Notes: generated by a model from the sequence alone, not told the origin. Numbered from the stretch's first letter, positions 8,936-64,000 are shown. The stretch is 64,000 nucleotides of DNA from Eukaryota sp. TZLM1-RC (GCA_040285825.1 JAUPSS010000004.1:3603658-3667657), one strand, 5' to 3'. Numbers and translations are program-made.

Positions 8936-9419
8936 GTTGTTTTGTATGGTGTTTTTCAACACTATTTGGGTAATAAATGTGATTTTATTTTATTTTCTAT
9001 TTACCTCAGCGATTAGTTTTATGAAAAATAATTAAATTAATATATTAATCAATATTAATCAAATATATTACATATTATTTAATAAACTACTGTATGCAAT
9101 AGTTGTGGATCCTCAGTTGTCCATCACTGAAACCAAGCAACAAGAAGATACAAATTCAACAGAAAATAGCATTGGTTCTGGTAGGCATTTAAAGAGAAGA
9201 CGTTTACTCGTCACAGACTTACCTTGAGTAAATCATGCAAAAGCCTGTGAATCAAGCCTGTGGAAAAGAAATAGAAGTGCCACATGGTTATACAACTGAT
9301 GGTTGTATATGTATACATGGTTGAGACAGACCAGAAAAATTAAAACAAAAAACTCCCATTCCATCTACATTGGTGTAAAGAGCACACTTTTTTCATTGTT
9401 ATAGAGAGCATCAATAAGA

Positions 9420-11147
9420 ATGAGTCTTTGTTCTCGGTTCGTAGTCCATGAATCCCAAAATGACATCCTTATTTACCCCTTGGATCCATTACCCCCTCTT
9501 GGTATTGACAGAGATACTGCCGCTATTTCTCAGTTCAACGACATAGAGCAGCCTCCTCGGTCATATGGGCACGAAATTCTAGGCATACTGGGCCTCATTA
9601 CCATCAATTCGTATTCATTTATAATCACAGTCACCTCTGCCAACGTTGTTGCCCAAATAGGCCATCATGAAATCTGGCTTATAGAGTCCATCAACACCCT
9701 CCCTTTACGGACGTACACCTCTACTTCATTCCACACTGCTCATTCGCTGTGTAAAACGGCTTACTCTGAGCGTGGTCTTTACTTTTCCCCGTCCTTGCCC
9801 CTCTCTCTTCCTCTTTCCTCTTCGCTTTACACATCATCTCCCATATGGAGTTGTTCAGATTCATCCTTTGTATTTAACAACTTTGCTGCCGCTACATTTC
9901 TCTCTTCTTGCTCCTCTGACCTCTCATCCTATGTCCTTCCTGTCACCCAGGGATACTTTGGCATGGTACCCAGAGCTATTCTTTGTGGTGATGTTTATCA
10001 TTCTCTCTGCCTGTTCTCACGTAGAGATGTTAGTAATCTTGGAAAAAGGTTCACCAGAAGGGGGGTTGATTTCAACCATTCACATACCCCTGCTAATACT
10101 GTAATCACTGAGCAATCAATCATTTCTGATTGCGGAAGGAGTTTGATTGGATCGTATATTTTAATGAGAGGTTCAATTCCACTCCAATGGAGTCAGACAC
10201 CAGATCTGACTTTGAAACCATCAATCAAAATGATTGAAAATGATTGGAACGACTGTGATGTTTTCAGGTCAGTTGTCGAAGATTTACAAAGATCCTTTGG
10301 CAAGCCTTTGGTTTTTGTTAATCTCATCAACCAAAAGGGACATGAAGGAGATTTGTGTAGAGCCTTTGAAAATTTGATAGATGAGACTAATATTGACGGT
10401 TTTTCCTACTATTATTTTGATTTTCATAAAGAATGTTGTGGGTTTCAATATCAAAAGGTCGCTAGTTTGGTTGAGTCAATCAGCTCAGAATTAAGCTGGA
10501 ATATGGCAGAAAAGGTTCAAAAAGGCATCGTCAGGGTCAACTGTATTGATTGTCTTGATCGAACTAATGTCGTTCAATCATTTTTATCACGATTTGTCCT
10601 TCATCGACAGTTACATTCCATTGGCAGTCTCTCAGTCAACAACATCACCTCAATCAATCAAACACGTGGAGATCTTTCCTATTCGGGAACGTGTAAGTTT
10701 GACAAGGACCTTGAAGCTGCCTTTTCGAACCTTTGGGCCAATAATGGTGATGAACTGAGTCTTCAATACGCAGGAACATTCGCGATGAAGAGAGATTTCC
10801 TAAGAAAAGGGAAAAGGACATTCACTGGGACTTTATTTGATGGCTATTTAAGTATATCCAGATTTATATTAAATAATTTCAGTCACGGTCATGTTCAGGA
10901 CGCTTTGGATTTGGTAATTAGAGGTAGGAAAGGAGAAGTTGTAGGTCAACAAAAGTCAAGGTTTTTGAGCTGTGGAATATGGTCGATGTTACTATTTTTG
11001 GTAACAGGAATGGTTTTTTTGAGAAGAAGTCCTGTCAAGATGGTTTTATTTATTGTATTTGTTTCTTTTTTGTTTAAATATGCGAAAAGGAAATATTTTT
11101 CTAGGTTTGTTGTTAAACCAAGATTATGTTTTAATAAAATAAATTAA
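9420..11147 (+). CDS. SAC1: SAC1 phosphoinositide phosphatase
   Basis: RGSIPLQWSQ, FDFHKEC, catalytic RVNCIDCLDRTN (CX5R) and two C-terminal hydrophobic helices. Confidence 0.92.
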   Translation: MSLCSRFVVHESQNDILIYPLDPLPPLGIDRDTAAISQFNDIEQPPRSYGHEILGILGLITINSYSFIITVTSANVVAQIGHHEIWLIESINTLPLRTYTSTSFHTAHSLCKTAYSERGLYFSPSLPLSLPLSSSLYTSSPIWSCSDSSFVFNNFAAATFLSSCSSDLSSYVLPVTQGYFGMVPRAILCGDVYHSLCLFSRRDVSNLGKRFTRRGVDFNHSHTPANTVITEQSIISDCGRSLIGSYILMRGSIPLQWSQTPDLTLKPSIKMIENDWNDCDVFRSVVEDLQRSFGKPLVFVNLINQKGHEGDLCRAFENLIDETNIDGFSYYYFDFHKECCGFQYQKVASLVESISSELSWNMAEKVQKGIVRVNCIDCLDRTNVVQSFLSRFVLHRQLHSIGSLSVNNITSINQTRGDLSYSGTCKFDKDLEAAFSNLWANNGDELSLQYAGTFAMKRDFLRKGKRTFTGTLFDGYLSISRFILNNFSHGHVQDALDLVIRGRKGEVVGQQKSRFLSCGIWSMLLFLVTGMVFLRRSPVKMVLFIVFVSFLFKYAKRKYFSRFVVKPRLCFNKIN

Positions 11148-15660: not shown

Positions 15661-16172
15661 TCCAATGGTTGATAGTTTCTGTTTTACCTCAAATAAGGCA
15701 ATGTTGTATATTTAGTGATTCAAAATAAAGAAAGAGATAAACTTTACTGAACAATCCATTATTCATTGTTATTCCATCTTATTCCTTGTTATCCTTCTTA
15801 TTTGGTAAAAACGGTGAAGAGCTGAACGACATTCGCAGAATGAATAGTGTGTTGATATAAAGACTTTGGCACACCTTTAAACTCCAATTATTTAGCTCAA
15901 CAATTGTATCAGAGACAGTTGGAGTTAGTTTATGTGAGTTTAAATTCAGTTAAAAACTAAGATTGCCCTGATGCTCATTTGCAACAAGTTTTGGTTGGGT
16001 GAAGTGGAATTCATTGGAAGGAAGGGTTAAATAGCATGCCCTCTTAACCCGTCCTGTTCTGATCATTTTTTAAACACTATTCCGATGAAGATTCAGAATT
16101 TTATGTTTCTTCATGTCAATTACATCTTAATGCCTTTTGAACCACTATCAAGATCTCATTCCACTCTGTTCG

Positions 16173-18329
16173 ATGACTGATAGTAAAATCATCAATGTCT
16201 TGATTGCATTGGTACCAGATTATCTACACAACCCTTCTTCAACTGATGTCTCCATCTTCCAATACCCGTCTCTTCCCCAATCTGTTCTCTTGAATTTACA
16301 AATGGTATATTGTCTCGATCTAAGCAGTGTCGATTCTTTGTTCGATATATACAAGTGGTTGCGACAACGACCAGTGCCATGTGGGAATGGTGATAAGGTG
16401 TTTTCCTTATTTGACGAGGATCATCAATTAATTTCGGATTTCCAATCTTTATTCCACCTACGAACGATAAAGGCATTCAGATGGACCTCTGAATTGATTG
16501 ACACTGTTCGTTCCTTCTACTCTAACCCTAACCCCAACCCCAACCCCAACCCCAACCCTTATTTCGATGCCTTTGATTACCATGACATTTTGGAGTCTTT
16601 GACATTGTTAGAGGAACAGCATGCTCTTACGAATGAATTGAATTCGCTTTCTATTTCAAACATAAACTTGGTCCAAAATGTTCTCAAACAAGGTTCAGAA
16701 TCACCAAGACTTTATGAGAAAGTCAACCAAATTCCCACGTTTCATTTCAAACGACTTCTTGAGGCAGTCGTCGCGAGTAATGATGACTTTGGGGTTTTTA
16801 TTGTAAGAGATAAGGATTATAGAAGGTCAATCACAAAGCCGAAAACTGCTAAAATTGAAACTTTAAAACAATCTTTTTTGATTGAATTTCTAAACAACCA
16901 TCATTTTCCAGATGATTGTTCAGTGTCTCTTATTGAAAATCCTTCTGTTCAGAAAGTCAGGAAAGGATCCTCACCTCCAAACTCTATACTTTATGGTGTT
17001 GGAGTCAATCCCCATGAAGCAGTGAGGAATGTCTTGTTTCATTTCCCGGCACTTTGGGTTCTTCAGGATGCAGAATTAGTAAAGAAAAGGTTCAAATTGC
17101 TTACCTCCATAGGTACGGTTGTCACATTGACAAATTTTCACGTAGTTATCGAACAAGACTTAATTACTGACCATTCATTCATCCCAACAACTTGGGAAGC
17201 GTCATTCGACACCTCAATCAATCAAACTGATGGGTGTGGTTTGATTTCTATCGAGCTATTGGAAGATATTCTTTTGAAATATAATTGTATCACTGCTACT
17301 GATTTCACTTTGTCAACTGTTGGTTCTCTTCAGTTTAGGTACCAAGGATTCAAAGGAATGTTAAGCGTTGATCCCAATTTAAAGGGAAGGGTTATCATCA
17401 TGAGAGATTCAATGAAAAAGTTTGAGGAAATGGATATATTGAATGGACTGTTCAATATTTTGAATCTTTCTAAAGTGGAAAAGGGTAATTTTAGCATGTC
17501 TTTGGGAATAATTTTGTTCCAATTACAACTTGATAATGAATTGAGACATATTATCTTTCGAAACTTGAACAAAAACAAAGCCATTCAGTGGGACAAGGGC
17601 AACAAAACCAAACCAAAGTTTAAACTGGATTGTTTGTTCTTCACCAAGGCTGTTGCTGATCGTTATTGGACGAGTAATTCTCGAACAGCTTCATTGAGGG
17701 TGTCCGATGACTTTTCGCTTCCTCCATGCTCGTCTCTCTCTATCAGAAGTAGTTGTATCGTCCGGAAGTGTTTAGTTTTCCGGTATCCTTGCGTTTCCAG
17801 AGCTGACATTTTACCTTTAACCTTCATTGAACGCCATTCGTCCCCAATCAATACAGTGGTGTTTTCTGCTAACCTAACCATCGTCCCTACTGGATACCAT
17901 CTCGCTGGTGGGGACTTTGATGGAGATGATTACTATTTTCTGCATGATAAGTCTGCGGTTGAGTCTGCTTTTGAAAAATTAGGATGCAAGCAGGAGTTTC
18001 AATCTTCATTTGACCATTCCCCTCTTACATGTAACGAGAAACCTAAGCCATCCGAATCTCTAAGTCCTTTTGATAAGTTTGAAGATACAGGACGGTGGTA
18101 CAATTTGATCATGAGTTGTGGCGCTTGGAATGTAGATGATGTCTGTGCCATTTATTACAAAGTACTGGATGGTGCTGCGTTTGATTATGAGGAAAAGGAA
18201 CTCGAAATGAATATTCAACGGCTGATCAGAAAGTCGAACCAAAAAGTTGAACTTAATTCTATTCTTGGATGGATAAATGAGGCACGTTTACAAAGTGGCC
18301 ATTCAAAATTGGACCACATAAGTTGTTAA
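16173..18329 (+). CDS. Eukaryotic RNA-dependent RNA polymerase (RNAi, two-barrel type), compact
   Basis: TDGCGLIS, QFRYQGFKGML, MRDSMKKF, VFRYPC, VVFS and catalytic AGGDFDGDDY. First in-frame ATG at 16173. Confidence 0.88.
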   Translation: MTDSKIINVLIALVPDYLHNPSSTDVSIFQYPSLPQSVLLNLQMVYCLDLSSVDSLFDIYKWLRQRPVPCGNGDKVFSLFDEDHQLISDFQSLFHLRTIKAFRWTSELIDTVRSFYSNPNPNPNPNPNPYFDAFDYHDILESLTLLEEQHALTNELNSLSISNINLVQNVLKQGSESPRLYEKVNQIPTFHFKRLLEAVVASNDDFGVFIVRDKDYRRSITKPKTAKIETLKQSFLIEFLNNHHFPDDCSVSLIENPSVQKVRKGSSPPNSILYGVGVNPHEAVRNVLFHFPALWVLQDAELVKKRFKLLTSIGTVVTLTNFHVVIEQDLITDHSFIPTTWEASFDTSINQTDGCGLISIELLEDILLKYNCITATDFTLSTVGSLQFRYQGFKGMLSVDPNLKGRVIIMRDSMKKFEEMDILNGLFNILNLSKVEKGNFSMSLGIILFQLQLDNELRHIIFRNLNKNKAIQWDKGNKTKPKFKLDCLFFTKAVADRYWTSNSRTASLRVSDDFSLPPCSSLSIRSSCIVRKCLVFRYPCVSRADILPLTFIERHSSPINTVVFSANLTIVPTGYHLAGGDFDGDDYYFLHDKSAVESAFEKLGCKQEFQSSFDHSPLTCNEKPKPSESLSPFDKFEDTGRWYNLIMSCGAWNVDDVCAIYYKVLDGAAFDYEEKELEMNIQRLIRKSNQKVELNSILGWINEARLQSGHSKLDHISC
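16522..16559 (+). repeat. Telomere-like (CTAACC/CCAACC)n tract encoding Asn-Pro repeat
   Basis: ctaaccctaaccccaaccccaaccccaaccccaaccct, translated NPNPNPNPNPNP. Confidence 0.8.
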
Positions 18330-45489: not shown

Positions 45490-46075
45490 TATTTATTGCA
45501 CTCGTACACTTAACAAAATAAACTCATAACTAATGGGACGAAATTTATTGAACCAAAATTTCCTCTACAAAATCCTAATCTGTTTGATGTTTAGCTAAAG
45601 CTTCTCTAACTCGATTGCAAAACCGAGGCAATCTATTAATAATGGTAAATTGAATCCGAGAGCGCTATCTAACAATATCAAATTTTTTTCTTGTTCTTTC
45701 TTGAACCATTTCTTCGAAATCATTCGAAACAGTTCTTGCTTCTACTGATACTTTTCTGTTTATAGAAAATGGGAAAGTAATAAAAAAAAGTGGTCTATTT
45801 CTATCAGCATTAGCTTCTTCAATATCTTTGTCATGTTTTCTATGTTTTTTTGGGTCTTAAATTCGAAATCATCTACAAGATTAAGCTTTCTTTTTTGAAC
45901 CAAAGTGTCGTTTGCAACATTATATGAGACAAAGTCAACAACAGCTTCAGAGTTCTCAATCCAATCACAGTATATAACACCTCTATCATCAGAGGCAAAA
46001 CTGTTCAATGACAGTGTTTCTTTCAGCAGAGGCTCTTTGATACACGAGAATCTTGCGGTTCGTGCCATATTGAAA
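45490..46075 (-). mobile_element. 5'-truncated family A copy
   Basis: MARTARFSCIKEPLLKETL... and family 3' UTR on the minus strand. Confidence 0.85.
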
Positions 46076-46110
46076 GTTTAATTAAATAAATTAAAATTTC
46101 ATTTTGAATC

Positions 46111-47551
46111 ATGATATTAGAAACAATGAACCTGGCGAAATTTTTATGGTCTCATTACACTATACACTTCCTTCAAATTAAGAATTGTGTCAAGTCTGAA
46201 AGCCTGGTTGATATTATATTTCCAGTTGATGTACATTTTCCTGCTGATGCTGTTGAAAAAGTTCATCGAATATTCTTAAAACCAGCAATTACGATTGCTC
46301 AAATTGATGACAGTAGAGAAGGGAAACCTTATCACGTTACCCCTGTATCAACAAATGTAGGTTCTGGATGTTTTGCAATTGATACAAGATCAATATTCTT
46401 TATTTATTGAATTTGCACGCTTAATTAAATCAATATGGACAATTTTTAGACCAACATTGAGGGACGATTTGTTGCCTAAACAGAAATTGAAAATGTTCGA
46501 TACACAAGATCAAATTCACACATTAAACTACCTGAACAATTTGACTTTTGGTACAATATTATTGATTTAAACCAAACAATGTTCAAACACAAGATTTATA
46601 AATTTAACAACATTATTCAAACAGAGGGACTCAATATTGTGCTGAAATTTGTCCGTCGAGATTTGAAAAGTCAGAAATGTGAGCCATACAACAAGGCCAG
46701 TATTCTCGATTTAATTATTGATGATGTTGAAGTCAATACTTTTCAACACAAACGAATTGTTGTTTGTGATCCTGGAAAACGTGTTTTTCTGTATTTTGGG
46801 AGTAAAACAACGGATCAAGAATTGACCACGGTGCCTGAACATGATACTGAACAGCAAAGAAATGGCCCAGTGAATAAAGACAATAAATTCAAATGGTTGA
46901 GAATGATTCAGATGTCGTGGTCTTTGAAAACAAGGATTAATGAAAAACACAAACGATGGGCAACACAGTATTCTGAGGCAGAACAAGCAAGTCACCAGAT
47001 TATAGAGTCTAACGAAATGTAAATGACAATCGAAAATGTAAACAGCAACTCATCAGCGTTTGTTGCAAATTCACACCTTTGATAGATTTTCCAATTTTGT
47101 GGTTGCCAAACTTCGGCAAGTTTTTTGACAATTGATTTTTACAGTCTTGACCTGTGGAGCATTCACAAAATGCAAGCTTTTATTCACAAACAAAAGACTG
47201 AAAGTTGGTTATTAAAAAACCTTGTTCAACAGTTTGGCAATCCAAAAAAAATTAATACTAATGGGTGATTATGGTAAAAAAGGATGTAAAAATTTAAAAC
47301 ATCATTGGCCTACTCGAGAAATGGAGTGGATGCAATTTCAGGAAAGGAAGGGATTTGAAATATTGATGATTAATGAAGCATTCACTTCAGCAAAATGTCC
47401 TCAATGGCTCAACAATGCGTTTCAATAGAAATAAGCTGGCATGCCTTAAAATGTTTGCAATTGCTGAAGCCATAATGAGTGGTAATGAAAGTCCTCAGTA
47501 TCTGTGCAGAGATTTTTGGCAATTATTCCACCCTTTCCCACAAAACTTGTC
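46111..47551 (+). pseudogene. Fanzor (TnpB-like) remnant, 5'-truncated and frameshifted
   Basis: In order: AIDTRS, FNNIIQTEG, VVCDPGK (46768), LMGDY (47264), INEAFTSAKC (47375), FNRN (D>N) and SPQYLCR. Confidence 0.8.
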
Positions 47552-47656: not shown

Positions 47657-50600
47657 ATGGATTATGCCTCAATTGAATCTTTAGTTCGATTTCGTTTACG
47701 TAAACCAACTTCCACTAACATTGTGGACATATTACTTCGTTTATCACCTGAATCGTTCCAGGACATACGGCGTCACTTTGGTGGAAAAAGTATCTTGAAC
47801 CTTCACACTGATGACTTTCCCACTTCACTATCTGAGTTTGATTTTGTCAAAGTATTAAAACCACATGTTGTCCAATACTTTTCAGCTGACCTCCAAGATT
47901 CCCCTCTCAGAACTGCTCTCATCAATCTCTTCCACACCATTGACACTTCCTCTTCTGGATCAATCACCTTTGAAGACTTGTCTGAGTACATCATGAGCGC
48001 TCTAGATAGAGGAATGACCAGTGCATCAGACACTCTCACGGTTTTTGCTAGGAAACTTGGTCCTAGTTCACACCGACCTGACTCTCTCTCTTCACCATTT
48101 CATATCCACTTCCCACCCTCCAAAGTTGTTCATATCCATCGTACTTCTTTTGCTTATCTCCTCTCATCCTCAATTGCAATCTATTCTCTTCCCTTCACTC
48201 GTACCCACACCATCCCCGTTGCTTCCCCCACTGCTGTTTGTTCTGCCGGCAAACCTCACACAATTGCTGTAGCCTCTACTTGGAGGGTTTACATCTACGA
48301 CCTCCATACCACCACCATTCTTACCACATTTGACCTTCCCTCTTCGGTTCTTTCGTTAATCCATGTCCCTTTTATAGACTGTCTTTGTTGTGGTCTCGAT
48401 GATGGCCGTATTGCCCTTCTTTTGCTTTCCTCACATGATGTTATAGGGACCACCTTACCTCTTGTTTCTCAGCCCGCCCACGATGCATGGGTCACTTGCT
48501 TGGCTTGTGGTAGTTCTTTCAAAGGAGTTGTTAGTGGTGGTGAAGATGGCAAGCTTTTTGTTTGGACATTGGACTCTATTACTCCAAGTTGCTTTTTGAA
48601 TGCAGGAAGCACGATAAATCTCAAACAACGTAACCTTCGGCCCAAATTAGAATTAGAAGGTGATAATTCTCCAATTACTGCTATAGATATGGCCGAATCT
48701 CTATCAAATTTGATTGTTGTTGGATCACGCAGTGGTCTTGTTACGTTTTACTCTCCTTTTCTATCAAGATCTTGTGGTTCTGTTTCTTTAGGTCGGCCGA
48801 TCGTAAACGTCATCATTTCGCCTTCCTTGTCCTCTGTCCTAGCATTAGATCAAGCTGGTAGGTTAAAGGTAGTTGATATCAAAGTTTTGCGTATAGTTCA
48901 GGTCTTGGGAGAGTCTTCATCTTTAGTTTATCAATCATTTATCCAATCATTTGATTGTTTTCGATCTGATAAGCGTCAGACAAGTGGTACTATTGTTGTT
49001 GTGGACAGGGAAGGAAATTCAACCCTTCTAGATGAAGAACGGAGCTCTGGTGGCTTTGGCTCTTCAATGGCAACAAACTCATTGTATGCTAGTGGAGAGG
49101 AAATTTCAGCTGCGATCAATGTCGTGATTCTAACTGCAACCAACTCTGTGGGGGTCGTTTTCGGAAGTTCTTTATTTTGTTATGACTTGCTTGATGGAAG
49201 ATTCCGTTTTTCTTTGGGAGGTTCCATTTTGAAACTTGTGAATTATTTTTCATTCAATGGAGCCATTTATTATAATTTTAAATCAACCAAAAGTATAACC
49301 GAGACTGTTTCCCCACTCTCAGAGCTCCAATCCTGTTCCTTTCATGAGCAGTCAAGAAAGCTTGTTCTTGGGACGAGTTGCGGAATCTTGTTTAGTTTCA
49401 ATGCGGACAATTGGTCTCCCTTGTTTTATTACAAATTAGCAAATGAACCTGTATTGGATTTAAAATTCTTTGAATCTAATACTGAAAAAGGAAGACAAGT
49501 TAGTCTACTAGTGTACTTCAAATGCCGAATTGTTGTTTTAAATATTACAAAGCCAGACTATCCTTCATGCATTACTGTAATAAGATTCAATTCTAAGATA
49601 GTTGATTCCGAGTTGTATCATGTTGGTGTGAAAACTTTTTTATTCGTGTCCAGTAATGATTCTTTATTTATTTATGAATTGATCAACACTTTGGATTCTT
49701 CTTTTTCTTCATTAATCTGCAAAATTGATTTCGTTTCTGTTCAATATTTACATTATTGTCCTCTATTGAATGTTGTTTTTTGTTTAGTTAAGGAGGGCGA
49801 ATCTGGTTTTGTTCATGTTTTATGTGGACTCTCTTTCAGAATTGTTTGTGTTTTGGGCTTGCCCATGACTTTGGAAGACTCTCACGTTTGCATGGAAACT
49901 TGCCCTGTCAGACAAATACATGATGATAATGAAGAAATCGTTTCAGTCTTTTTAGCAATTTGCAATTTAAATAATTTATTTATTTTTGATTTAAGCAAAT
50001 TAATCAACTCCATCAAGAATTTCAACACGTCTTTGTTAACCAAAAATTCCAAATTCCAATTTGAATTTACTGAACATTTACTTTGTTTCTCATTCAATCA
50101 ACTGCACCCTCTTTTTACTACCACTAATAGAGAAATTAAAGTCTTTAAGATAAGATATGTTACTTCAACTTGTTTTCCTTCTAGCATTTCTTTTTTGAAA
50201 TCAGTACCCAATGCATGTTCATTTACCGTGGGCTTTTCTGATGGAACAATAAAATTAGTTGATGCTCTTAATGCTGATGGTCGGCCCCTTGCTCAGTTAC
50301 ATTCACCTAATCAATCAGATTTGATTGGTTGGCATTTAGAGCGCTCATTATTCATTGATAATCCACATTCTCCTCTCAATGTAGTTTCTGATGGTGATCA
50401 GCAGACCCGAGTTGTTTTTGGAGAGTCGCTATTTGAAATTTCTCGACAAATAGAAACTTTATTGAGTTTCTTCAATCTGGAACCCTCTTTAGATACCTCT
50501 CTATGTCGTTCAACATCCACTGTTTCCCTTGGATCAATTGATTCTGAACAAACATTTGGTTCACCAGCAAGAAACTTTAACTTGAGTTCTCTGGAACCCT

Positions 50601-54568: not shown

Positions 54569-55099
54569 TTAGAGTTGTTGCCCATTGAACTGGCCATTGT
54601 ATACTCCTTCACCATGCATTCTCATGAAAACAAACTGGCAAACAGCAACACCAGGCTTCAGAATGAGAGTGTTAGGAGATGCATTGTAAATTTCAAGTAC
54701 TTGTTGATTTTTGATGCCGGGGTTCATAAATCCAGCGGTGATATGAATAGCCATTCCAAAGCGTGCGAAGCGAGACCTACCTTCTAAAATGCCACAATAG
54801 GATGGAGAGAGGTGTATCGTTTCCTTGGTGATACCGAGGCAAAGTTGACCAGGCTTAAGTTCAAAACCCTCGTCATCAGAGACGACAACCTTTTCAGTGT
54901 AAGCCTTGTAGTTGCTGGATTCAATCATCGGTATGGCTTCGTTTCGTTCAGGAAAGAATCTGAATTCATTGTCAAGGTGGAGATCAATAGAGGCGCAATT
55001 AACTCTTGATTTGTTGAAAGGGGTGATGGATATGTCCCCAGACTCAATGGCTGATAGGATTTCGTCTTTACTTAGTACAGCTCCGCAGGGAGAGTTCAT
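54569..55099 (-). CDS. dcd: dCTP deaminase (trimeric dUTPase superfamily)
   Basis: ASIDLHL, LEGRSRFARFG, HITAGFMNPG, VLEIYN, VCQFVF and YNGQF. Confidence 0.88.
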   Translation of the reverse strand: MNSPCGAVLSKDEILSAIESGDISITPFNKSRVNCASIDLHLDNEFRFFPERNEAIPMIESSNYKAYTEKVVVSDDEGFELKPGQLCLGITKETIHLSPSYCGILEGRSRFARFGMAIHITAGFMNPGIKNQQVLEIYNASPNTLILKPGVAVCQFVFMRMHGEGVYNGQFNGQQL

Positions 55100-55759: not shown

Positions 55760-56193
55760 AAGGTAGTGTAAAAGATTTGGTAAATAAAATGGAACAAAAA
55801 ATTCACCTCACATGGTTTTAGACGCATGGTTTTTTAGCATGGTTTTAAACGGCTGGCAAATAAAGAGGAGCCCCGGGAACGTCTGCTGCCAATCTCCTGA
55901 AAAAGGGACATTGTGTTGTTACCAAATTAGGGGTGTTGTCTTGAGAGCAAATTTATATTTGGTATCCAGAATTGCGCTTTTGGCGCCACACTTGGCATGT
56001 GCTGGAATTGTTTCTACAGAAATCTTCCAGACTAAATGATTGCTGGTTACTCCTTTCATTTCTTCTGAACCATTGAACTGAAGAACAGATTAGCCAGTCG
56101 TTATGAAACGTAAGGTTGAGGGAACGAAGCTTCAACAGTAGCACCAGTCTTTATGTCAAAGCCCACCACTGCAATGACGAAGTTTGTGGTCAT
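55760..56193 (-). pseudogene. Possible uDENN (DENND6/AVL9-like) gene remnant
   Basis: MTTNFVIAVVGFDIKTGATVEASFP resembles the uDENN start; stops follow. 3' extent is uncertain. Confidence 0.35.
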
Positions 56194-56369
56194 GAAAATG
56201 GATTGGATTGGAATTGTGATGAGACTTTGAGATTGATGGCGAATGTTGGTGAAATGAATGAAAAAGAGAAAACCTCCCAAAACCAAGTTGAGGGTTAAAA
56301 ACCAGCCAGAATGGGCCACCAGAAGTCGCGATTGGGGTGACTAGTGCAAAATTTGAGAAATAAGCTCAT

Positions 56370-58896: not shown

Positions 58897-58920
58897 AAAT
58901 AAGCTCATTATTTTCACTAC

Positions 58921-61900
58921 ATGTCAGACGCACCCCCTGGTCCAAATAAAATTCAGAATTATATGGATTCGCTGCTGAGTGAAACCATCCAGGAGCAAGC
59001 TTGCATTGAGCCCTACTGGGAGCTCATTTCCAGCCCTCCTGAGATTCCACCTTCACAGGTGAGTTCTTGTTCAACCAAATGTAACAAGGGAACTTTTTCT
59101 CATGAAGACTCTCCTTACCATTTGGTTGAAAATAGACTACTTGGTCAGATTGTCTCTTCCTCTTTTTTAATTGAGAAGGGTCGATGTGTCCAAGTAGTCC
59201 ATCATGAAGTTTTTAAAAACTGTTTTTTAATTAATTATTCCACATTTTTGATTAATAAACATTTTTTAAATCCTTCAAGAAAACACACTATCTATGAATT
59301 TGCTGGTCGTGTCTGGGGCACGAACCTGGAAGCTGTTTGTGTTTTCCACATCAGTGTTTCCACCCACAGCCTCTTTATAGAAGGGAGCAATTCATTTTGT
59401 GTTTATTTTGGAAAGATTGATGATCCATCTGATAAAATCTTTTATAATTTTTTTATTAAAAATTATATAAATTTAATTCCTTTTTATAATAACAATATAT
59501 ATTTTAAAAAAATTAATTTATCAGGTGGAGGGCAACAAAGTCTTGATGTTAAAGACAGGTGGTTAGATGATGAACAAATCACTGATTCGATCAACAACTT
59601 TATCAATCAGTCATCAACTCCACAGTCACATCACAAAATACTTGTTTGGTCCATCGCATCAGCCCTATTGTTTTTTAGGGGATATGTTCAAGAGGATTTT
59701 TGCTCACAATTTATCAATTCTGAGGATGGAGAAAATACATTGATTCTTCTACCCTATAATGATGCATTTCATCAATCAAATTTGGTTGTATCTGTTGAGG
59801 AACAATTTACCATTGGTCAACATTGGGTACTTGTTGCATTTTGGATCAAATTCAGAACAGTAAAAGCTTTTCTTTTTGATAATCTTCGTCATAATGAAGA
59901 ACAACATCAAAAAATTAATTCAGTAATTTTTGAAAAACTTGGAATCAATATCAGTCAGAATTTATCAGAATTTTTTCAATCTAATTTGTATGATTGTGGA
60001 ATATTCAATATATTGTTTGCAAAAAGAATGATCAATTTGTTTTTGTCAAATCAGCTCAATTCAATTGATTCAGCTCATGTTAAACATTTTGTCAATCAGG
60101 ACAAAAGTTGTTTTTATAGCTGTGTTGACATTGAACGAAAATCATTTGAGACAAAGAAATGCTCCTCTGTACATAAAAACATCAGAAAAAGGCGAGCTGA
60201 TGTATTGAATAGACCTTGGAAACGTTTAAAAACACTTTTCAATGACAATCCACTGACTCAATTCAAATACCTTTTAGTGACATTATCAAATGTCAAAACA
60301 CAATTTATTCTCAAAATTCTACATTTTGATATTGAAACTTTGGTGTTGGGTAAAAAGCTCAGTGATGAGGATGAAATAATTGTCATTGCTGCATGAAAAC
60401 ATTCCATCTCTTACTGTCAATCTACAAGAAAGATTGTTGCAAATTCTGTTTCTCATATTTTTACTGGAGAACAGATTGAACTAAATCTTTGTTTTTGTGA
60501 TCTTGTAGAAAAATCAACAAGCAGAAATGAACATTATTGCACAGTTGATGATAAAGATATCACTTTATATCATCATTCCTCTGAACAAGAATTGCTGAGT
60601 TCATTTGAAAAATTATTAGAAACTTAAAATCCTCATATAATATGTGGTTTTAATATTCTCAATTTTGACATCCCACATATTATGAAACGTTCTGAAAATG
60701 AGGACTTTTTTAAGGGTGAAATCGGTGCTACTGAATGGGTTCAATTCCATAACTCAAATTTAATAGAATTGAATCACAAACACTTGAACCCCTTAATTGC
60801 TGGTCGATTTGTTGTTGATATTTGTAGTATTTACACAAATTATGACCAACCACGCAAACTAAACACAGTTTATAAAATTTTATTAGGGGAAAGTAAAATT
60901 GACCTTGATCCCCAATATATTGCAAAGTATTGGAAGGTTCATGAAGATGATCCCTTCTCAGATTTTTCCTTATCCCAAAGAAGAACTGCAGTTGCAGTTT
61001 ATTGTTTAAGCGATACAGATTTAACCATGAAATTATTTAATTTCTTTAACAATGACCAATTCATGGAAACTGTTAAACAAAAACCTTATGATGGTTATAA
61101 GGACAGTCTAAAAAATGTCATCAGAGATCCGAAAATGATTGACGTGATCGATGAGGCAGTAATTAGGTGTCAGGAAATTTCTATTGTTGGTTTAGAATTC
61201 ATTTGTGGTTATTATTTGCATCTTTTTGACTTAAACCCAAATGCTATTTTACCAAAAATTGAAACCCAATTATTTCGTGACTCTTTTCTTGTGGTCACGT
61301 CTCAAAGCGATGAGGAAATTTCCCTTAACGCAAATACAAAAACAGTTTTGCAAAATTCTCGTTGTGCCCCGTTGTTGGAATTCTATCACCAACACTTCAA
61401 AGAAAAACTTGTTCCAAAAGTTTTATCAAAAAAAGGAATCAGTAATATTTTGCATTACACAATTGACTGATTGTGAATTTCAAAAATAACATCCAGGAGC
61501 ATTACTTTGATTACTTGAATCGGTTTGTCGATGTTTTTTATGATGTTAAGAGAAACAACAACGTCCTGAAAAAGCAAGAAAAGAAAAACTTCTCATCATT
61601 CATCAGCAAAGTTAAATCCCTCCTTCTAGAAGGATGTAGAGATATTGATGGCGAAACTTCTACAATGAGAAACAAAGTCTCATCAATTACTTCGCTTTTC
61701 ATTAATGACCAGATCCCTCTTTTACTTCCCAGTAATTCTAAAAGGGAAAAGTATTCAAAATTTGATTTTTCGTCAAAATCAAATTATTATTTGAGGGCAA
61801 TGTTTTATATTAATAATTATTTAGAAGATGAGGAGAGTAAACTCTTTCATGCTCTGCCTTTGAAGAATTCTTGTATTCCCTCGTATATCAGAATTGACAA

Positions 61901-63303
61901 GACAAGTTTATTGGACATGTTCTTTGTCCAATTCAAGGACATTCTTGGTCCAAGGTCGTCTTACCAATGCAATAATCAAGCTGCTGATTTGGTTTTATGG
62001 GACACCATTTTAAAAATTGACGAGATTAAAAACACTAAACTTTATGCATAAAATTCCAAGTACATCATGTCTAGTATCGAGACTGATGGAATAGCAGTAT
62101 CATTCATTCAATTTAGAATGGACTTGAAAAAGTACAAAGTAACTGCAAAAGAATTAAAAGATAAAGAAAAATATATTGATGATCCCAGCATCAATCCTTC
62201 TGAATTTCAAGCTATGACCCTTGCTGCTGCTGATCCAGGAAAATCTGATCTACTCTATTTTTCTGCCAATTTAGCTACTGGAATGACTCATTCAAAAAAA
62301 ACCTGAGAGAGATAAATACGTTCATTTCAGGTACACTCAAAATCAACGAAGATTTGAGTCGAAAAGTTCCAAATTCAAAAGAATAAGAGACAGCATACGC
62401 AATGACACTCTTATCACAATAAGTAACTCCACTGGTAGAGTGATTGATCTATCCAATTATGAACCATCTGAAGAACAACAACAAAGAATGGATTTAAACA
62501 GCAGTATAATTAATCAAATGACTGAAAGAACAATTAGTTTATTAAGAGGTGAAGTGCCTCAAGAAATCAATATTCCTCACGAAATTGATTACTCATTCAA
62601 TTTGAGAAATAATGATCACACGACTAAATCTGTAGCAGAATGGGAGGCAACATTATCCCAATTCAATTCCAAAAGCTGCAGGTTTGATAGATTTATGGAG
62701 TACATCAAACAAAAGAATTTTGTGAATAGTATCGTTGGTCAAGTCTATCATCAAAAAATATTTAGGAAACTAAGATGGTGGACTGAGATTAATCGCACAA
62801 GATCCGAGGCAAAAATGATCCAAAGATTCAAATCTGTAATTGGTGATCCCAGCCAAGTAGTTATTGGAATCGGAGACTGGGAACAACGAAAACACATGAA
62901 ATTCAAAGAACCTACCAAGGGAAAAGGTTTGAGAATTCTATTTAAAAAGGCTGGTTATAAGGTCTTTTTGATTGATGAGTTTCGAACCAGTTGCTGTTGT
63001 TTCAACTGTAAGAGAGCGGAGAAGACAGTTGAAACATTCAGATGGTGCAGAAATCCTAGGCCATGGAAGAGGCATGAGATGTCTATTCGTCACGGGCTTA
63101 CCATGTGTAAATCATGCGAAAGTTTGTGGAATAGAGATCGAAATGCTTCGTTGAATATGTTGGCAGTGATGGAAGCACATGTAAATGGTGGAGATAGACC
63201 GGAATACCTGCAGAGAGTCAAGGTTGGGGGAGGCTCAAAGAAAAAGGTATTGAGAAGAAAATCTTCCACTTCCCAAAAACTCAGTCCCTCTACATCGGTG
63301 TAA
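58921..63303 (+). pseudogene. Ulp1 protease - PolB 3'-5' exonuclease - Fanzor1 fusion gene (3 in-frame stops, 2 frameshifts)
   Basis: Ulp1: WLDDEQI, QHW, FD, QSNLYDCG. Exonuclease: FDIET, GFNILNFD, YCLSD. Fanzor: NNIQEH, IETDG, DPG, RYTQNQRR, GDW, IDEFRTS, two Cys pairs, NRD, RPEYL. Confidence 0.9.
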
Positions 63304-63343: not shown

Positions 63344-64000
63344 ATGGTTTCAGTTTGTCTCGGATCTTCAACATGTTATTGTGCTTATAAACATCCAGAC
63401 ACTGGTCGTGTTCACTTAATACCAGATCAAAATTCAGGTGCACCAGGTTTTTCTCTACTCGTTTTACGTTCCAATGACTCTATGTATGACTCTTATGTAT
63501 CAATTGACACTCAATCTTCAGAGAATGCGTTGGACATGTGTTGTGGTGAATCTGATAACAAGAAAATGCTTATTTTTGTTCCAATTATCAAACGCTTGTA
63601 CAACAGCATTTCCAACTTTATAGATTTACGCTACGAGCCAGTGTACATCACCTTTTCTAATGGTATTAAGCAGATTTTGGGTGAACCACTGCTAAAACGC
63701 CTCTTTTCGCAAGTTTTTCCAACATACTCATTACGACTAGAATCTGAATGTATTGCCTCTACATATCAACATTTCAGAGGCCTTGCTGGCCATGCCAAAT
63801 ATCTTGTTTTTGATTGGGGTTATAGGGATTTAAAGTTTTCTGTTGTGGATTTCAATTTATTTGGAAAACGTGAATCTTATTCTGTGAATCATTCTTATTT
63901 AAGTGGATCATTCCTACTTGGTCATTTGGTTGATCATTTCTGCAAGGTTTTTGACACAATGTTTCAATCAAACATCATTGATTACCCACAAGCAGTTCAG
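63344..64000 (+). CDS. Divergent Hsp70-superfamily protein, runs off the window (not in ORF track)
   Basis: Stop-free from ATG 63344: MVSVCLGSSTCYCAY...GRVHLIPD...LRLESECIAS...YLVFDWGY...LSGSFLLGHLVDHF. Confidence 0.65.
   Translation, partial: MVSVCLGSSTCYCAYKHPDTGRVHLIPDQNSGAPGFSLLVLRSNDSMYDSYVSIDTQSSENALDMCCGESDNKKMLIFVPIIKRLYNSISNFIDLRYEPVYITFSNGIKQILGEPLLKRLFSQVFPTYSLRLESECIASTYQHFRGLAGHAKYLVFDWGYRDLKFSVVDFNLFGKRESYSVNHSYLSGSFLLGHLVDHFCKVFDTMFQSNIIDYPQAVQ

Follow-up and report, generated by a model that had tools for sequence, protein, structure and literature searches.

The 64,000-nucleotide stretch of DNA analysed here, from the assembly of Eukaryota sp. TZLM1-RC (GCA_040285825.1, JAUPSS010000004.1:3603658-3667657) and referred to below as the window, carries near its right end, at positions 58,921 to 63,303, a broken gene in which an N-terminal region, a probable Ulp1/SENP-like protease, the proofreading exonuclease of a family-B DNA polymerase (PolB) and an RNA-guided Fanzor1 nuclease follow one another. 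On balance, it appears to be one dead copy of a Fanzor1 mobile element that is multicopy and non-autonomous and whose active ancestor encoded one protein of about 1460 amino acids (aa). That the gene is a single unit and not a chance adjacency is confirmed by other genomic copies, which are colinear with it and open at every one of its lesions. The source organism, Skoliomonas litria TZLM1-RC, is a free-living metamonad from a soda lake (PMC11603281); repeats make up 55% of its genome, and the paper describing that genome does not mention Fanzors (PMC11316075). In sequence searches every piece of the gene finds its closest relatives among hypothetical proteins from Eukaryota sp. TZLM1-RC, and the long open reading frames (ORFs) adjoining the element in the window are ordinary eukaryotic genes. 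The gene is made up of the following parts.

58921..59529, plus strand: N-terminal region, aa 1-203, found in the window copy, L001 and L173
59530..60045, plus strand: probable Ulp1/SENP-like (clan CE) cysteine protease domain, from its motif and an Atlas match
60091..60297, plus strand: linker with a basic stretch (RKRR...KRLK) resembling a nuclear localization signal, from sequence
60313..61047, plus strand: PolB-type (Pol delta-like) DEDDy 3'-5' exonuclease, aa 465-709, from Pfam, PDB and hidden Markov model (HMM) matches; broken by the stops at 60394 and 60625
61078..63237, plus strand: complete Fanzor1, from matches to PpFz1 and SpuFz1 and an HMM; broken near 61465, at 62049 and at 62294-62301
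62400..62620 (approximate), plus strand: insertion of about 78 aa between RuvC-I and GDW, from a comparison of spacing

Three-frame translation defines the breaks. In the frame of 58921, the only stops before 61468 are those at 60394 and 60625; frame 0 carries the gene from 61467 to 62303 with one stop (62049), and the first frame resumes without stops from 62287 to 63300, ending at the ORF stop, 63301-63303. The two changes of frame are a 4-base loss near 61465 and a 1-base gain in the run of eight A residues at 62294-62301. Counted with an X for every one of the five breaks, the gene has 1457 codons; joined analyses used this form, with no repaired or consensus version, and database searches were run on the separate pieces. 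An earlier inspection of the bare DNA (the sequence-only reading) had located these three stops and two frameshifts as well as the catalytic motifs of protease, exonuclease and Fanzor, and translation finds each of them in its place. It had also described the frameshifts as mutually compensating, which must be given up: they are independent lesions with a stop between them, and their sum of -3 is a coincidence without functional meaning. None of the five lesions is shared with another copy: the three stops are sense codons elsewhere, and neither frameshift occurs in any other copy examined. Introns or a variant genetic code were rejected as explanations, since the stops are of two kinds and read as sense in sister copies. 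The lesions were read from the assembly alone, and any single one of them may be an assembly error; at 60394 and 61465 the short-read contigs carry only the open alleles of other copies, the window locus itself being uncovered.

The sister copies comprise ten loci (L001-L008, L172 and L173) with 87-97% DNA identity, a closeness that points to recent amplification. L001 corresponds to the window copy along the whole element, minus a retrotransposon-like insertion (see below). L173 has the N-terminus, protease, exonuclease and Fanzor, and L003 the last three of these; L002, L004, L008 and L172 have the exonuclease and Fanzor, and L005-L007 are 5' truncations that keep the Fanzor only. The exonuclease-Fanzor order is colinear in seven other genomic copies, three of which (L001, L003 and L173) include the protease as well. 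In L001 a single stop-free stretch spans protease, linker and the ExoI motif of the exonuclease, and the next such stretch opens directly behind ExoI, takes in ExoII and ExoIII and extends into the Fanzor N-terminus. Stops in the other copies differ from those of the window copy, each copy having its own. The claim of a single fused gene is upheld by these colinear copies, open at each lesion. A one-off juxtaposition, a possibility raised in the sequence-only reading, or an assembly artefact might be argued from the fact that no short-read contig spans the window locus, but this is hardly credible: five further contigs in the assembly show the same domain order, the family's short-read contigs cover 29 of 30 bins, and the independent copies refute it. 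One short-read contig joins window position 58933 to 60406, omitting 1472 nucleotides (nt) and placing 31 other letters between, and represents a copy without the protease part.

The identification of the nuclease as a Fanzor1 is borne out, and it is nearer to this type than to Fanzor2. Its PDB matches are only PpFz1 (E 4e-22) and SpuFz1 (E 3e-19), a Fanzor1 HMM scores 198 + 303 bits over aa 720-1436, and Pfam TNB lies above its cut-off. The RuvC residues are Asp 62232, in the DPGKS motif of RuvC-I and kept in eight of nine copies, Glu 62977 (the shifted Glu) and Asp 63136 (RD). The TDG motif of the WED domain is at 62082 (ETDG, 62079-62090), and the shifted RuvC-II Glu, C4 zinc finger and RD are arranged as DEFRTSCCCFNC...CKSC...NRD. 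DPG, TDG, the shifted Glu, the zinc finger and RD are marks of Fanzor1 (PMC10711439); all are shared with SpuFz1, PpFz1 and the stand-alone Fanzor1s encoded on giant-virus contigs, P0043 and L091 among them, as is an omegaRNA-like right end that overlaps the end of the ORF. Identity to stand-alone viral Fanzor1s is 30-32% over the whole length and reaches 55-60% to viral relatives in the C-terminal block. Because similarity to stand-alone Fanzor1s spans aa 715-720 to 1436, the nuclease is complete. Known Fanzor1s are mostly 600-700 aa long (PMC11423790), whereas here 715 aa precede the Fanzor. The spacing from DPG to GDW is 211 aa, against 133-135 in relatives; PpFz1 has a RuvC insertion of about 100 aa compared with 78 aa here, a comparison by size only.

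The exonuclease retains ExoI (FDIET, 60325), ExoII (GFNILNFD, 60646) and ExoIII (YCLSD, 61000), with the four acidic residues and the Tyr, and the acidic residues are kept in every copy that covers them. The same ExoI DxE, ExoII N-x3-FD and ExoIII Y-x3-D define the proofreading domain of Pol delta and other family-B polymerases (PF03104). Pfam DNA_pol_B_exo1 (PF03104) scores 24.1 bits against a cut-off of 23, and 32.7 bits in a sister copy (P0003); the PDB matches are to Pol delta in all cases. Built from twelve PolB exonuclease domains, an HMM reaches 105-110 bits across aa 465-709, and ExoI, absent from the finding query, is part of the match; the score is generous, as the training set was picked by similarity to the query. 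The domain is about 35% identical to PolBs with all three Exo motifs kept, its database matches have E values of 2e-6 or worse, and the best single match, a PolB of Pol delta-like type whose contig is gene-dense and virus-like, is too weak to name a donor. Unlike in Pol delta and its relatives, no polymerase domain follows, and the exonuclease is fused to an RNA-guided nuclease: it ends at aa 709, and Fanzor similarity starts about 10 residues on, at 715-720. On both counts, the Pol delta-like type and the missing polymerase, the sequence-only reading was right. A phmmer search of the junction piece against 1.8 billion representatives returned three Skoliomonas fragments, PolBs and Fanzors, and no intact fusion.

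Selection was tested with a neutral spectrum taken from 4-fold sites, the changes being split into shared and private. For the Fanzor, omega is about 0.27 among shared changes and 0.63 among private ones (p 1e-5); for the exonuclease, the values are 0.24 (8 changes, p 0.05) and 0.66 (p 0.017). This pattern indicates that the exonuclease is constrained together with the Fanzor, with purifying selection acting on both.

In the protease domain, His 59821, Asp 59878, Gln 59977 and Cys 59995 stand in clan-CE order. The motif order HW..D..Q-x-DCG arises in only 16 of 100,000 shuffles of ORF1, the first piece of the gene, and L001 and L003 both retain the four catalytic residues. The ESM Atlas returns a score of 0.95, with Peptidase_C48 in 28 of 30 matches. 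From the motif and this language-model match, the domain is very probably a Ulp1/SENP-like protease of clan CE. Homolog searches with ORF1 and with the protease matched only themselves, among proteins of 0.55-1.75 times the query length, a range outside which full-length fusions fall. Structure predictions are too low in confidence to be usable (pLDDT 29 for ORF1, AF2 pLDDT 36 for the protease), and the empty result of a fold search with the protease model carries no meaning. The N-terminal region has no match in Pfam, NCBIfam or the Atlas; it ends in LSGG (59518-59529) directly before the protease, a candidate Gly-Gly cleavage site. A ubiquitin-like fold before LSGG, suspected by eye, was dropped for lack of Pfam or Atlas support. 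The basic stretch of the linker is a putative nuclear localization signal, and the loci of the exonuclease-Fanzor family contain no 2A peptide motif. Ulp1 domains are common cargo of DNA transposons, such as Mutator and Ginger (PMC2836005). The clan-CE protease of Mutator and Ginger1 likewise forms part of a mobile-element protein, but it is joined there to a DDE transposase and here to an exonuclease-Fanzor, behind LSGG and with no transposase.

The search for the fusion extended over 162 viral and metagenomic loci with 163 Fanzor ORFs, and 142 of these ORFs are uncut by the locus start. None of these 142 Fanzor1 relatives matches the exonuclease, the protease or the N-terminus; residues upstream of the C-terminal block number at most 474 in 90% of relatives, against about 1265 here. 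A single-sequence scan of viral data likewise gave no match, and to date only Skoliomonas is known to have the exonuclease-Fanzor fusion. Natural exonuclease or protease fusions are missing from the main texts of the primary Fanzor papers, a structural survey and a 2026 review, where the word exonuclease does not occur; the wider literature, with subscription papers largely outside its scope, yielded only engineered exonuclease-nuclease fusions. The architecture therefore seems as new as had been supposed, none like it being found in the searchable Fanzor literature. Its nearest counterpart is the engineered TREX2-SpCas9 (PMC13370227), which also tethers a 3'-5' exonuclease to an RNA-guided nuclease; the fusion described here is natural, PolB-derived and known from sequence alone. 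Fanzors serve as compact genome editors, and engineers deliberately equip RNA-guided nucleases with exonucleases; the exonuclease-Fanzor1 fusion, natural and under selection, indicates that evolution did likewise and offers a tuned linker and module. A viral Fanzor1 ORF of 847 aa (L083, 3009-5561) has an in-frame N-terminal P-loop (GPSPSGKS) helicase-like region and is possibly another natural Fanzor fusion.

The wider element, which the finding of the sequence-only reading did not take in, and its surroundings comprise the following parts.

56063..56369, plus strand: left part of the leader, 88% identical to the region directly upstream of the ORF in L001
56370..58896, plus strand: insertion resembling a retrotransposon without long terminal repeats (non-LTR), outside the element; absent from L001 and repeated often in the window and the loci
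58897..58920, plus strand: last part of the leader before the ATG, common to L001 and L173
63225..63346, plus strand: right end, candidate omegaRNA scaffold, overlapping the ORF end; the 3' arm of its predicted terminal hairpin runs up to and includes the ATG at 63344-63346
63344..64000, plus strand: host ORF of 219+ aa that begins at the docked ATG and exits the window; its first bases would be the guide

The 2.5-kb insertion splits the leader and is flanked by a 12-bp target duplication, AAATAAGCTCAT, at 56358-56369 and 58897-58908; shared leader sequence was traced back to 56063, the left limit of similarity. The last piece of the left leader part recurs in L173 and ahead of a different Fanzor ORF in L004. 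The latter (1700-1, minus strand) is divergent and Fanzor-like, called as 651 aa, with DLG for DPG and no exonuclease; as it stands behind the same leader of about 125 nt, the leader is common to different Fanzor genes. On the opposite strand of the leader (window 56104-56340, minus; L001 7974-8162, minus) there is a decayed frame that by eye resembles a DENN/AVL9-type start, with no Pfam match, and that is possibly the start of a captured host gene.

The right end is conserved up to the ATG in 11 aligned copies and unrelated beyond it. In 16 of 16 right-end hairpin remnants found, an ATG follows the core motif at a distance of 5-6 bases; in 14 of the 16 this docked ATG opens an ORF of 90 aa or more, against 1.4% of random positions, and many of these ORFs are called genes with Pfam domains. 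Right ends of the family are fixed at host start codons. The genes so docked are unrelated to one another and include Elongin A, ARS2, UCH, an acyltransferase, a deaminase and ApbA, among others. Fanzor1 uses an RNA from the right end, with the flank as guide. Start-codon docking implies that the predicted guides are the starts of host genes, and the ends of the element lie where promoters or leaders should be. The docked ATG completes a predicted 12-bp terminal stem, and the hairpin is likened to other Fanzor1 reRNAs, in which bases of the target site enter the terminal stem and the RNA extends past them (PMC10711439). In the window, the host ORF at 63344-64000 resembles by eye the N-terminus of a very divergent Hsp70 ATPase, with no match in Pfam, NCBIfam or PDB. 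A decayed right end at 9320-9422 precedes a SacI-domain gene at 9420. Repeated insertion at one spot is suggested by L005 (8676-8704) and L006 (8481-8509), where about 150 nt separate a newer truncated copy from an older right-end remnant, upstream of it, that has a dead-end ATG.

The copies are 5'-truncated at scattered points. Intact 3' ends with hairpins, frequent 5' truncation and non-autonomy are shared with the Helitron2-borne Fanzor1 elements CRe-1/2/3 (PMC3627910); here, in contrast, the truncated copies have no target duplications, no terminal repeat was found, insertion is at a host ATG and there are extra enzyme domains. The element recalls Helitron2-borne Fanzor1s but falls outside their definition and is not filed as a Helitron. 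The likeness, the recent amplification and the L004 ORF, which uses the same leader without the extra domains, lend some support to the idea that chance swept the extra domains into a single master copy, through Helitron-like capture, and that they multiplied with it while serving no function. Such a sweep is nevertheless improbable, given an in-frame joint of only about 10 residues, Exo motifs kept at about 35% identity to PolBs, and a synonymous excess in the exonuclease.

A model of RNA-guided cutting, 3' trimming and copy-in repair is somewhat favoured as an account of the whole. The guide would be an omegaRNA that is read from the right end on into the opening bases of the host gene; it would direct the Fanzor to alleles of that gene that lack the element, and the Fanzor would cut there. 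The tethered Pol delta-type 3'-5' exonuclease would trim the 3' ends, so that they could not simply be re-ligated and mismatched ends could prime on the element-bearing template; trimming would then favour copy-in (homing), and perhaps new copies that are 5'-truncated. The Ulp1-like domain would most likely cut after LSGG and free the N-terminal part, or might remove SUMO or NEDD8 near the break. Proofreading by Pol delta is known to take as many as 40 nt off an invading 3' end (PMC10868807). Trimming might instead serve destruction, with both nucleases active and the exonuclease chewing the cut ends, degrading DNA of competing elements or viruses, or trimming the 3' end of the omegaRNA or a DNA intermediate of the element. 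The same selection and architecture data would fit, engineered 3'-5' exonuclease fusions such as TREX2-Cas9 enlarge deletions (PMC13370227), and the genome is 55% repetitive (PMC11316075). The predicted guides, however, aim at the opening codons of ordinary genes of the host, where deletions should harm the host; trimming that aids copy-in is preferred for this reason, and destruction is judged fairly unlikely. The fusion makes the role of Fanzors for their elements testable.

Several observations weigh against the copy-in model and its active ancestor. The window copy and all ten others are broken or truncated, and a PolB exonuclease domain cut off from its polymerase may have little activity. 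Folding of the right end is not significant (z about -1.6), and covariation is absent, the copies being too close for it. The copies have no target duplication (permutation p 0.73, none within 800 nt), a result of limited power as most left junctions are truncation points; a 10-bp match in L007, considered as a duplication, is within chance overall. The element contains no transposase, the fetched loci no RepHel, and no terminal repeat matching the right end was seen. As to the protease, LSGG is intact only in the window copy among readable copies, Glu replacing the second Gly in L001; Pfam Peptidase_C48 scores 12.9 bits against a cut-off of 20.7 (E 0.096); and omega is 0.82 (p 0.30), with no detectable selection but little power from 2-3 informative copies. 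The earlier Ulp1 claim consequently stands as regards the triad, the oxyanion Gln and the Atlas match, and falls short in the Pfam score, the lack of a sequence homolog and the selection test. These results open the way to a more modest view, that the exonuclease-Fanzor is the functional unit and that protease and N-terminus are passengers, or act on host SUMO or NEDD8 independently, as has been proposed for the Ulp1 domains of Mutator and Ginger. The N-terminus likewise gives no selection signal (omega 0.59, p 0.12, 2-3 informative copies), the sequence match of the protease is weak, and Ulp1 is frequent transposon cargo. Yet only 2-3 copies inform that test, in several copies 460 codons keep the reading frame of the exonuclease, the four catalytic residues are kept, and a Gly-Gly directly precedes the domain; the passenger view is thus possible but not the expected one, and it can be combined with either reading of the exonuclease.

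A bolder version of copy-in dispenses with a transposase altogether. The exonuclease-Fanzor would cut gene starts and trim the 3' end, host repair would bring the element in by copying that begins at its right end, and the protease would mature the polyprotein. This would explain why right ends are fixed at host ATGs, left ends are ragged and target duplications are missing, but it is regarded as a long shot. If true, this would be an RNA-guided way of spreading not described before, and it would give editors a natural model.

Elsewhere in the window, a second, divergent and decayed Fanzor1 (46000-47500, plus strand; DPG present) ends shortly before a WD40 gene at 47657, with no exonuclease match nearby, and an ORF at 54569-55099 (minus strand) resembles dCTP deaminase by eye. 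A eukaryotic RNA-dependent RNA polymerase gene lies at 16137-18329 (plus strand; Pfam RdRP), and its presence in a repeat-rich genome suggests RNA silencing.

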